Assembly: GCA_002269645.1 (NCBI GenBank) | Contig: NIVC01001153.1 | Span: 62,001-126,000 of the forward strand | Source: Macrostomum lignano | Taxonomy: Eukaryota | Direction of reading: 5' to 3' | Length of the DNA stretch: 64,000 bases | Shown here: positions 2,864 through 10,832 of the stretch, piece by piece | How the letters are laid out: every line of letters starts with the position of its first letter | Numbering within the stretch: position 1 is the first letter of the stretch | The notes under the pieces: generated by a model | What the model was told of the DNA's origin: nothing | Databases searched by the model: none | The model's input: the letters and a program-made list of their open reading frames with translations, nothing else | Position numbers and translations under genes: made by a program

Positions 2864-4303
2864 TTAAGCCTCCTCCTCCTCGCCCTCGACCTCGCCCTCG
2901 TCCTCGGCGGTGGCGTCCTGGTACTGCTGGTACTCGGACACCAGGTCGTTCATGTTGCTCTCGGCCTCGGTGAACTCCATCTCGTCCATGCCCTCGCCGG
3001 TGTACCAGTGAAGGAAGGCCTTGCGCCTGAACATGGCGGTGAACTGCTCGGAGACTCGCTTGAACAGCTCCTGGATGGCGGTGGAGTTGCCGATGAAGGT
3101 GGAGGACATCTTCAGGCCGCGGGGCGGGATGTCGCACACGGCGGTCTTCACGTTGTTCGGGATCCACTCGACGAAGTAGCTGCTGTTCTTGTTCTGCACG
3201 TTCAGCATCTGCTCGTCGACCTCCTTCATGGACATGCGGCCGCGGAAGATGGCGGCGACGGTCAGGTAGCGGCCGTGGCGGGGGTCGCAGGCGGCCATCA
3301 TGTTCTTGGCGTCGAACATCTGCTGGGTGAGCTCGGGGACGGTGAGGGCGCGGTACTGCTGCGAGCCGCGGCTGGTCAGCGGGGCGAAGCCGGGCATGAA
3401 GAAGTGCAGACGCGGGAACGGCACCATGTTGACGGCCAGCTTCCTGAGGTCGGCGTTCAGCTGTCCGGGGAATCGCAGGCAGGTGGTCACGCCGGACATG
3501 GTGGCGCTCACCAGGTGGTTCAGGTCGCCGTAGGTCGGGGTGGTCAGCTTCAGCGTGCGGAAGCAGATGTCGTACAGGGCCTCGTTGTCGATGCAGTAGG
3601 TCTCGTCGGTGTTCTCCACCAGCTGGTGCACCGACAGGGTGGCGTTGTAGGGCTCCACCACGGTGTCAGACACCTTCGGGGAGGGCACCACGCTGAAGGT
3701 GTTCATGATGCGGTCGGGGTACTCCTCGCGGATCTTGGAGATCAGCAGGGTGCCCATGCCGGAGCCGGTGCCACCGCCCAGCGAGTGGGTCAGCTGGAAG
3801 CCCTGCAGGCAGTCGCAGCTCTCGGCCTCCTTGCGCACCACGTCGAGCACGGAGTCAACCAGCTCGGCGCCCTCGGTGTAGTGGCCCTTGGCCCAGTTGT
3901 TGCCAGCGCCGCTCTGGCCGAACACGAAGTTGTCCGGCCGGAAGATCTGGCCGAACGGACCGGACCGGACACTGTCCATGGTGCCGGGCTCCAGATCGAC
4001 CAGGACGGCGCGGGGCACGTACTTGCCGCCGGTGGCCTCGTTGTAGTACACGTTGATGCGCTCCAGCTGCAGGTCCGAGTCGCCATGGTAGGTGCCGGTG
4101 GGGTCGATGCCGTGCTCGTCGGAGATCACCTCCCAGAACTGTCGATTGTCGAAGAATTTCAAAGTGGAAACTAAGTTAGTCATGCTCAAAAAGTATTAAA
4201 AGTGGCTTTGTAATATCGCAGCGAAGGCGTAGATGGATTAGCTTACCTTGGCACCGATCTGGTTGCCGCACTGGCCAGCCTGTAGGTGGACGATTTCGCG
4301 CAT
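2864..4303 (-). CDS. TUBB: Beta-tubulin, copy A (exons 4303-4247, 4138-2864; 443 aa)
   Basis: [19 protein letters not shown]|[20 protein letters not shown] motif, acidic tail; 108-bp GT-AG intron at the conserved codon-19 position. Confidence 0.98.
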
Positions 4304-4479
4304 GTTGGCTAAGAGCTGAGCGAGTCGGGAAGCAAAAGCTTCAAAGAGAGCTTAGACGGGCTTTTGAGGTTAGCTGAGGAGCGCCGGAGCGGTTGGCCTC
4401 GGGGCCGCCCTCGGCTGCCGCTTTTATGCTTTTCTCGGCCCGTCGGCGGGGGGGCAGCGTCGCGAAGGCGCCGCTCGGC

Positions 4480-4930
4480 AACGGGGGTTGAGCGCCTGGC
4501 AACGGCTTGGTGGGGTGAGGGTGAGGGTGGGTAGGGTGGCTGACAGGGTGGAGTTTCAATTGATAGCCCCCTGCCGCAGTCTATGCAAAAAAGGCGAGGA
4601 GCGGTGGAGGTTGGGAGCGGCGGCTTTGCTACGCCTTCGTCAAGCCGTTTTTCTCTCTATTGTTGCCATGGTAGTCTCTGGGGTATGGGGTAGGGGTTGG
4701 AAGAGCAGCTTTCAAAGAGGCGCGGGTACGTGGTTTAATGGTTGGCAAGTTAGGCAAGGCTGGAAAGCGAGAGAAAGGGGGGACTGGCGGCGGCCCTAGC
4801 AACGGCGGGGTAGTTGGCAGGTTTGGAGAGAGATGAGGACAGGTAAGAGAGAGAAAGAATGCTTGGGTTGCGCGCGAACCCACACGCTTTAGAGCTGCGA
4901 CCAACTCTTCTTTCTGGCCATGGCAACCCC
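4480..4930. promoter_or_regulatory. Tubulin A upstream region with RFX X-box-like sites
   Basis: GTTGCCATGGTAG at 4662-4674, CTGGCCATGGCAAC at 4914-4927, CCCTAGCAAC near 4794; CATAAAA TATA-like element on the minus strand near 4425. Confidence 0.55.
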
Positions 4931-5229
4931 CCACCCCCTCTTGGGGGCGTCCATGACAACCGCTTATGCCTGCCCCTACCTAGAAGAGTGGGGCTGTTTA
5001 TCTTGAGTACGGAGGGTTGAGTTAGAAGCGGCCGCATAACTTAACTGCGACTGAGTACAGTAGCGTGAGCGGATACTGCATGCATTCCTGTCGTGCAATG
5101 TTGGAGGGGGTGGACAATGCGTATCTCAGGAATGCTCTGCAGTGATGATGACGCACGTTCGATGCAGCTGCATGGGACAATGGGCAGCTTGGAGCCTGCA
5201 GAATATAGAAGAATAGGCCGAGGGGGGGG

Positions 5230-9060: not shown

Positions 9061-9067
9061 TATAAAA
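9061..9067 (+). promoter_or_regulatory. TATA box of tubulin B
   Basis: TATAAAA ~120 bp upstream of the ATG at 9183, preceded by C/GC-rich boxes and TTAGCAAC near 8983. Confidence 0.65.
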
Positions 9068-9182
9068 CTGGTACCCCTCAGCGCCCGCCCGGCACTATCT
9101 ACACCGCCAGGACAAGCCAGTCTAAAGCTTCCTCTCTTATTCCGTCCAGACTTCTACATCCCCCCTTACTAATCCCGTCAGA

Positions 9183-10832
9183 ATGCGTGAGATCGTGCAC
9201 CTTCAGGCCGGACAGTGCGGTAACCAGATCGGTGCCAAGGTGAGCGAGTGTTCAAGTTCGTTGGATCATTTTGATTTTGATTTAGCTTAACGATTTTAAA
9301 AATCTAAGGCTAAATATAGTATTGTAGTTTAAGTTTACCTGTCAGGTCAAGATTTATTTATACATTTCTTATAAAAACTAAAATATTGATCAATTGAGGG
9401 AAACTTCGTTGAACTTCGTTGAAATTGGTAGAAAATAGCATAATATTCTTGTTTAGTTTCCCTAGGATATGCACATGTTTACTCTACTTGTAGTAGTATA
9501 TCTTCCAAAAGTTCAAATCTTCTATTGTATTTGCAAACCAATTGAAACAATCGACAGTTCTGGGAGGTGATCTCCGACGAGCACGGCATCGACCCCACCG
9601 GCACCTACCATGGCGACTCGGACCTGCAGCTGGAGCGCATCAACGTGTACTACAACGAGGCCACCGGTGGCAAGTACGTGCCCCGCGCCGTCCTGGTCGA
9701 TCTGGAGCCCGGCACCATGGACAGTGTCCGGTCCGGTCCGTTCGGCCAGATCTTCCGGCCGGACAACTTCGTGTTCGGCCAGAGCGGCGCTGGCAACAAC
9801 TGGGCCAAGGGCCACTACACCGAGGGCGCCGAGCTGGTTGACTCCGTGCTCGACGTGGTGCGCAAGGAGGCCGAGAGCTGCGACTGCCTGCAGGGCTTCC
9901 AGCTGACCCACTCGCTGGGCGGTGGCACCGGCTCCGGCATGGGCACCCTGCTGATCTCCAAGATCCGCGAGGAGTACCCCGACCGCATCATGAACACCTT
10001 CAGCGTGGTGCCCTCCCCGAAGGTGTCTGACACCGTGGTGGAGCCCTACAACGCCACCCTGTCGGTGCACCAGCTGGTGGAGAACACCGACGAGACCTAC
10101 TGCATCGACAACGAGGCCCTGTACGACATCTGCTTCCGCACGCTGAAGCTGACCACCCCGACCTACGGCGACCTGAACCACCTGGTGAGCGCCACCATGT
10201 CCGGCGTGACCACCTGCCTGCGATTCCCCGGACAGCTGAACGCCGACCTCAGGAAGCTGGCCGTCAACATGGTGCCGTTCCCGCGTCTGCACTTCTTCAT
10301 GCCCGGCTTCGCCCCGCTGACCAGCCGCGGCTCGCAGCAGTACCGCGCCCTCACCGTCCCCGAGCTCACCCAGCAGATGTTCGACGCCAAGAACATGATG
10401 GCCGCCTGCGACCCCCGCCACGGCCGCTACCTGACCGTCGCCGCCATCTTCCGCGGCCGCATGTCCATGAAGGAGGTCGACGAGCAGATGCTGAACGTGC
10501 AGAACAAGAACAGCAGCTACTTCGTCGAGTGGATCCCGAACAACGTGAAGACCGCCGTGTGCGACATCCCGCCCCGCGGCCTGAAGATGTCCTCCACCTT
10601 CATCGGCAACTCCACCGCCATCCAGGAGCTGTTCAAGCGAGTCTCCGAGCAGTTCACCGCCATGTTCAGGCGCAAGGCCTTCCTTCACTGGTACACCGGC
10701 GAGGGCATGGACGAGATGGAGTTCACCGAGGCCGAGAGCAACATGAACGACCTGGTGTCCGAGTACCAGCAGTACCAGGACGCCACCGCCGAGGACGAGG
10801 GCGAGGTCGAGGGCGAGGAGGAGGAGGCTTAA
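9183..10832 (+). CDS. TUBB: Beta-tubulin, copy B (exons 9183-9239, 9558-10832; 443 aa)
   Basis: Same protein as copy A; 318-bp GT-AG intron after codon 19. Confidence 0.98.

Follow-up and report, generated by a model that had tools for sequence, protein, structure and literature searches.

Two beta-tubulin genes lie head to head in the genome of Macrostomum lignano, a free-living flatworm, and they raise the question of how a pair of duplicates can be almost identical along one long exon and clearly diverged, or unrelated, everywhere else. The genes, here termed A and B, are located on contig NIVC01001153.1 of assembly GCA_002269645.1 (Mlig_3_7), within a stretch of 64,000 nucleotides (contig positions 62,001–126,000, forward strand) that is referred to below as the window and supplies all coordinates; window positions 1–14303 are 100% identical to the stretch of this contig termed locus L002. 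The comparisons reported here indicate that exon 2 of the two genes has very probably been homogenized by homology-limited ectopic gene conversion between the inverted paralogs. No description of this M. lignano gene pair was found in the literature searched.

Genes A and B are divergently oriented, consist of two exons each and encode an identical beta-tubulin of 443 amino acids. In gene A, which is carried on the minus strand, exon 1 (19 codons; 4247–4303) is followed by an intron of 108 nucleotides (4139–4246; GTAAGC...GACAG, with GT..AG borders) and by exon 2 (2864–4138), which contains codons 20–443 and the stop codon TAA (2866–2864). In gene B, on the plus strand, exon 1 (19 codons; 9183–9239) precedes an intron of 318 nucleotides (9240–9557; GTGAGC...GACAG) and exon 2 including the stop codon (9558–10832). 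These structures were derived by translation, by comparison of exon 1 of B with that of A, by alignment of intron B to intron A and, for exon 2 of B, by a tblastn search. The start codons are 4879 nucleotides apart, and the intergenic spacer between them (4304–9182), in which no gene was detected, includes both promoter regions; the locus is therefore a palindromic pair of two complete, tightly linked genes in inverted orientation. The encoded protein is identical to PAA71604.1 and PAA78557.1, which belong to a beta-tubulin cluster of 15,420 sequences, and it shares 93–99% identity with animal beta-tubulins. In GCA_002269645.1, the product of gene A is annotated with the Pfam domains Tubulin (PF00091) and Tubulin_C (PF03953). 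Gene B is intact in the window and is annotated there merely as a fragment of 105 amino acids. A tblastn search found no other tubulin sequence in the 64-kb window; a different M. lignano beta-tubulin paralog (P0041) shows 90% identity, a comparison made at the protein level only. Look-ups of the exon-2 open reading frames (ORFs) of both genes among Logan, ENA and JGI contigs matched no independent contig.

A repeat search identified an inverted repeat with arms at 2854–4149 (minus strand) and 9547–10842 (plus strand), each 1296 nucleotides in length and separated by 5397 nucleotides, and a base-by-base comparison of the two arms revealed exactly 2 mismatches. One of these, at 4028/9668, is a synonymous change from GGC in gene A to GGT in gene B at position 111 of exon 2, and is the single difference between the arms in this exon; the other, at 2862/10834, affects the second base past the stop codon. 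Each arm is composed of the last 11 nucleotides of the intron (ACAATCGACAG), the whole of exon 2 and 10 nucleotides of the 3′-untranslated region (3′-UTR), and directly beyond these borders (from 2853 and 4150 for arm A) identity drops to the background level. The initial annotation of this stretch, made from the sequence alone, had described an inverted repeat of about 1.3 kb around a 5.4-kb spacer, a single GGC/GGT difference in exon 2, and identity reaching 11 nucleotides into the intron and about 10 nucleotides past the stop codon; alignment of the two copies showed all of its numbers to be correct, the match past the stop codon being interrupted by one mismatch.

Outside the arms, the two genes are far less alike. 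Exon 1 of A and that of B differ at 7 of 57 nucleotides, which fall in 7 of the 19 codons and are all synonymous, as had also been noted initially, whereas exon 2 differs at 1 of 1275 nucleotides (Fisher's exact test, p = 6e-10). If exon 2 had diverged at the rate of exon 1, the probability of observing no more than one difference in 425 codons would be 4e-83. Expressed as synonymous divergence (dS) by the method of Nei and Gojobori, the values are 1.09 for exon 1 (7 changes at 12.2 synonymous sites) and 0.0034 for exon 2 (1 change at 290.7 sites). Global alignments of the introns, of the 300 nucleotides on the 5′-side and of the 300 nucleotides on the 3′-side yielded 39–50% identity between A and B, which equals that of shuffled controls, and for the introns in particular the value of 50% is that of the shuffled control; the earlier description of introns, promoters and UTRs as unrelated was thus accurate, and only the last 11 nucleotides of intron A match intron B. 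The genes consequently display the mosaic divergence by which gene conversion is recognized, namely a near-identical tract with abrupt borders set in diverged surroundings.

Because the entire locus is present a second time, it was possible to examine whether this mosaic recurs elsewhere in the genome. In an exact-protein look-up, the 443-residue protein was found to be annotated on only two contigs, NIVC01001153.1 and NIVC01000679.1, and the latter carries a locus (L001) that is collinear with the window locus throughout, in the order flank, arm, spacer, arm and flank. The two loci are separated by approximately 1.3% substitution divergence in non-coding sequence together with many insertions and deletions (indels). 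The sequenced DV1 line contains three subgenomes that differ by 1.4–2.4% in single-nucleotide polymorphisms (SNPs) and by many indels (PMC10733133); because the divergence and the indels observed here are in keeping with these published data, L001 and L002 were treated as homeologous copies, which fits an origin in a recent genome duplication. The sequence comparison also supports the view that A and B are old duplicates, given an exon-1 dS of about 1.09 and saturated introns and flanks, with homeologous loci that are only about 1.3% apart.

The homeologous locus was used in place of a GENECONV-style outgroup test, by aligning exon 2 plus 30 nucleotides of flank on each side from the A and B genes of both L001 and the window. 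Outward of position −12 in the intron and of position +11 past the stop codon, these positions included, all variable columns of the flanks distinguish A from B at both loci, and the edges of the tract are identical in L001 and in the window locus. The 7 differences in exon 1 likewise all tell A and B apart in L001 as well as in the window, whereas within exon 2 none of the 1275 sites does so. Eight positions of exon 2 are variable among the four copies, and all of the substitutions are synonymous. Singleton substitutions were found at positions 57, 1111 and 1143 in L001 B, at positions 136 and 1260 in L001 A, and at position 111 in window B, where the T at 9668 is unique to this gene among the four copies. 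A deletion of 1 nucleotide at position 458 of L001 B (window equivalent 10015) shortens a CCCC run to CCC. The remaining position, 1083, is the sole parsimony-informative site of exon 2: it is C in both arms of L001 and A in both arms of the window, where it corresponds to 3056 on the minus strand in gene A, within a CGA codon, and to 10640 in gene B. Exon 1 and the flanks therefore group by paralog, and in exon 2 no site groups by paralog and one site (1083) groups by locus, the latter grouping having the direction that conversion predicts but coming from a single site, compared between homeologous loci rather than species. The arms of the window differ at 1 site of exon 2 and those of L001 at 5 substitutions and 1 indel. 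Since the deletion at position 458 shifts the reading frame, L001 B is annotated at NCBI as a fragment of 214 amino acids; the deletion may represent either early pseudogenization or a PacBio homopolymer error.

The same alignment provides an estimate of how freely the silent sites of exon 2 change. Between the homeologous loci, 3 synonymous changes were counted for A and 5 for B, against about 3.8 expected from approximately 291 synonymous sites at about 1.3% neutral divergence; the silent sites of exon 2 thus evolve at roughly the neutral rate, and the identity of the arms is not due to selective constraint. The arms were identical already when the two loci separated, as judged from the absence of any exon-2 site that distinguishes the paralogs in both loci.

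From this pattern, we infer the following course of events. Ancient head-to-head paralogs, each with its own promoter, first exon, intron and UTRs, would have been subject to breaks in one arm that were repaired by homologous recombination with the other arm as the template, such that the 1.3-kb exon 2 was copied. Heteroduplex or synthesis tracts would have extended only as far as A and B can still pair. Purifying selection on the protein would have kept the coding exon alignable and left the non-coding DNA free to diverge to saturation, and the tract would end within about 10 nucleotides of the exon borders because only the protein-constrained exon stays alignable. Exon 1, which is 57 nucleotides in length and cut off from exon 2 by at least 108 nucleotides of non-homologous intron, would be too short and would lie outside the homology block, and so would have escaped conversion. 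The template was genomic DNA, since the tract holds 11 nucleotides of intron and leaves out exon 1; conversion mediated by cDNA was rejected on the same grounds. The expected outcome is a pair of differently regulated genes for one protein, with a near-perfect inverted repeat of 1.3 kb as a by-product.

The timing of conversion can be approached from the same counts. The number of paralog-specific sites in exon 2 is 0, with a 95% upper bound of about 3, which corresponds to about 1% of the synonymous sites, and the exon-1 dS of about 1.1 amounts to some 80 times the homeolog divergence, a ratio with a wide confidence interval because 12 synonymous sites were scored. On these figures, the last full homogenization would fall within roughly the last 2% of the divergence history of the paralogs. 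Such a recent date is improbable for a single event and would be expected under recurrent conversion. The chance that conversion went on after the genome duplication is about even; the grounds for it are the one locus-specific shared site (1083), the asymmetry of 1 versus 5 differences between arms, and the timing argument. At site 1083, the presence of the non-preferred codon CGA in both arms of the window hints at a mutation that arose after the loci had separated and was copied to the partner arm. It is further possible, though rather doubtful, that the locus constitutes a natural clock by which conversion in a neopolyploid could be timed, in which the window pair has been freshly converted along the whole exon after the duplication and the homeologous pair has not: between the window arms there is 1 difference, and both have the derived CGA, whereas the L001 arms differ at 5 sites. 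In the L001 pair, with its frameshifted B copy, decay may be starting.

Several observations weigh against this reading. Conversion after the duplication rests on one site (1083), and the asymmetry of 1 versus 5 between the arms is not significant (P about 0.1–0.2). The six singleton substitutions that have accumulated on the four copies since the loci split are close to the number of about 7 that is expected without any conversion. The comparison of paralogs with orthologs was made only across homeologous loci and not across species. The main caveat concerns the assembly itself: Mlig_3_7 was built from PacBio reads with Canu at an errorRate of 0.04 and then corrected by Pilon with Illumina shotgun and RNA-seq reads (PMC5730564), and 93% of read pairs map to multiple positions in this genome (PMC10733133). 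Real differences between the arms, amounting to as much as a few percent, could have been lost in part, and the residual counts (1 and 5, and the one informative site) should be taken as approximate. Accordingly, the initial proposal of an old duplication whose long exon is being homogenized stood with respect to the old duplication and the homogenization, which are supported by the mosaic of dS values, the edges and the four-copy comparison, and the ongoing nature of the process was not proven, as it depends on one shared site, a nonsignificant asymmetry and the timing argument.

The explanation that survives best beside recurrent conversion is a one-off conversion, or replacement of exon 2, shortly before the whole-genome duplication, with the arms diverging ever since. 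Both the tally of singletons and the 5 sites and 1 indel that separate the L001 arms agree with such a history, which is nevertheless improbable: the state of site 1083 is common to both arms within each locus, although only about 0.01 sites of this kind are expected from parallel identical mutations, and a single event would need to have happened, by coincidence, in approximately the final 2% of the history of the paralogs.

It is much less probable that the identity of the arms is an artifact of assembly or polishing, in which many real differences were erased by Canu correction or by Pilon using multi-mapped reads. The pipeline and the read mapping described above would permit such an effect, as would the high expression of beta-tubulin, which would give very high RNA-seq coverage of the exon. 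Reads at a divergence like that of exon 1 (about 12%), however, map to their own copy, so that polishing cannot merge the copies; the tract takes in 11 nucleotides of intron that lie outside RNA-seq coverage; and both arms are placed on one contig between unique flanks. In addition, the independently assembled homeologous contig has the same edges, and yet its arms are still distinguished by 5 substitutions and 1 indel, which implies that arm differences at the 0.4% level survive the pipeline.

Slightly less probable still is a chimeric origin, in which illegitimate recombination placed a recently formed inverted copy, of exon 2 alone, behind the promoter, exon 1 and intron of another beta-tubulin gene. 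The very sharp edges on both sides would suit this scenario, but both junctions would be needed within about 10 nucleotides of the exon borders, with the splice acceptor and the reading frame preserved, and homology-guided conversion of pre-existing genes gives the same outcome without this coincidence. Selection rather than copying, that is, codon-usage or mRNA-level selection holding exon 2 of both genes at a shared optimum, can be set aside as exceedingly improbable in spite of the elevated third-position G+C content (GC3) of this exon, because its silent sites change between homeologs at a near-neutral rate and yet none is paralog-specific, against 7 in exon 1, and because non-optimal codons such as CGA at 1083 are common to both arms and the identity continues into the intron and the 3′-UTR.

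The exons also differ in base composition. GC3 is 96.7% in exon 2 of both genes (2867–4138 and 9558–10829), compared with 79% and 74% in exon 1 of A (4247–4303) and B (9183–9239), respectively (Fisher p = 0.005 and 0.0007); values of 51–68% were obtained for other ORFs in the window. The excess in exon 2 would agree with codon selection on a gene of high expression, with GC-biased conversion or with an effect of the 5′-end. Under recurrent conversion, long-term and possibly GC-biased exchange may have driven exon 2 to a GC3 of 97% and left exon 1 at 74–79%.

An inverted repeat of this kind also raises the matter of recombination between its arms. A crossover would invert the interval 4150–9546 and would swap the 3′-UTRs and downstream flanks of A and B. 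The flip of the spacer that the initial annotation had anticipated was not seen as a fixed state in either homeologous locus, the spacer having the same orientation in both. Single collinear matches span flank, arm and spacer on both sides, and A-type sequence is present on both sides of arm A in both loci; since both loci share one configuration, no flip has been fixed since they separated.

The M. lignano pair is a textbook type of concerted evolution, and its distinctive features are the intron-delimited tract, the mini-exon that has escaped conversion and the built-in homeologous replicate. The human gene pairs HBA1/HBA2 and HBG1/HBG2 likewise have conversion-maintained blocks with abrupt borders and identical or near-identical coding sequences beside diverged 3′-UTRs or introns, although these are tandem (direct) repeats in which crossovers delete or duplicate sequence, unlike the inverted pair described here. 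The bacterial genes tufA and tufB are, like A and B, inverted and highly expressed copies of a conserved housekeeping gene that are kept near-identical by conversion, and recombination between them can invert the interval; they differ from the flatworm pair in being prokaryotic, hundreds of kilobases apart and dependent on RecA/RecBCD. In Drosophila, the palindromic duplicates Amy-p/Amy-d and Hsp70Aa/Hsp70Ab undergo ectopic conversion that is confined to the coding sequence, with flanks and regulatory regions that evolve independently (PMC3924832). The M. lignano genes resemble them as tightly linked inverted duplicates, an arrangement in which a crossover inverts rather than deletes the intervening DNA (PMC3924832), but differ in that the coding region is split by an intron and only the long exon is homogenized, the 57-nucleotide exon 1 escaping, and in that the support derives from comparing two homeologous loci in a neopolyploid and not from species comparison or shared polymorphism. 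The closest case within the same protein family is that of the beta-tubulin paralogs of Leishmania, in which the coding regions evolve in concert by inferred ectopic conversion and the non-coding and regulatory regions are distinct (PMC1533823), as in M. lignano. Those loci were interpreted by the authors as meeting different expression needs and not as encoding different protein functions (PMC1533823); unlike the present pair, they occupy different chromosomes or form tandem arrays, and are intronless, polycistronic and not inverted (PMC1533823).

The 4.9-kb spacer yielded few recognizable features. No gene is annotated there in GCA_002269645.1, no Pfam match was obtained for the 11 ORFs scanned, out of 16 in the spacer that are 60 amino acids or longer, and no credible RNA family or tRNA was detected (Rfam at the gathering threshold and at E ≤ 1, which gave only sub-threshold noise, and a tRNA scan). 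The two promoters are built alike, with a CACCC-rich tract and, after it, a (C/T)ATAAAA box approximately 124 nucleotides upstream of the ATG (4425–4560 on the minus strand and 8994–9070 on the plus strand); homology between promoters A and B was not significant, the local alignment scoring 23 and shuffled sequences 19.3 on average and 28 at most. A block of 713 nucleotides in the middle of the spacer (6141–6853) is 100% identical between the homeologous loci, against a background of about 1.3% substitutions and many indels. This block has no Pfam-matching ORF and no Rfam match, and it could be either an element under conservation, regulatory or non-coding, or a segment exchanged between homeologs.

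Elsewhere in the window, tandem repeats are abundant. Approximately 25 tandem arrays score above 200 in the 64 kb, which fits the 15% tandem-repeat content of the M. lignano genome (PMC5730564). Minisatellites at 11375–12685, 14655–15541 and 18110–19398, with units of 23, 15 and 34 nucleotides, have a common core GGCGCCA, for which 182 matches were counted against 6 expected; the array of 15-nucleotide units comprises 59 copies at 100% identity and lies where an annotated gene of 1411 amino acids (minus strand) runs on past locus L002. Other units recur at scattered sites, a 28-nucleotide unit in two arrays (1035–1624 and 32019–32594) and a 31-nucleotide unit in three (27893–28381, 36776–37782 and 52121–53128). 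Pfam-matching ORFs encode the C-terminal part of a rhodopsin-type G protein-coupled receptor (105–941, plus strand), an RRM domain (47335–48081, plus strand) and a C2H2 zinc finger (60344–61990, minus strand), and these ORFs are probably exons of neighboring genes. A borderline match to the C/D-box small nucleolar RNA family snR61/Z1/Z11 was obtained at 51743–51819 on the plus strand (45.6 bits, with a gathering score of 45).

The case leaves the current understanding of gene conversion unchanged, and its consequences concern this genome and this gene pair. For annotation, A and B are two intact genes, B being represented in GCA_002269645.1 only by the fragments of 105 and 214 amino acids. Because short reads from exon 2 cannot separate A, B or the homeologous copies, the design of expression, RNA interference (RNAi) and knock-out experiments needs to target the UTRs, the intron or exon 1. 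An estimate of the age of the duplication from the synonymous divergence (Ks) of the coding sequence would misdate it by about 300-fold. The pair is also a candidate site of inversion polymorphism, and it provides a compact estimate of the homology that escapes conversion in a flatworm, as an exon of 57 nucleotides behind 108 nucleotides of non-homology has remained unconverted. Finally, as the promoters, introns and UTRs are unrelated and yet the protein is identical, the sequences suggest that the two beta-tubulin duplicates of M. lignano have been kept for different expression, and A and B may accordingly differ in their regulation.

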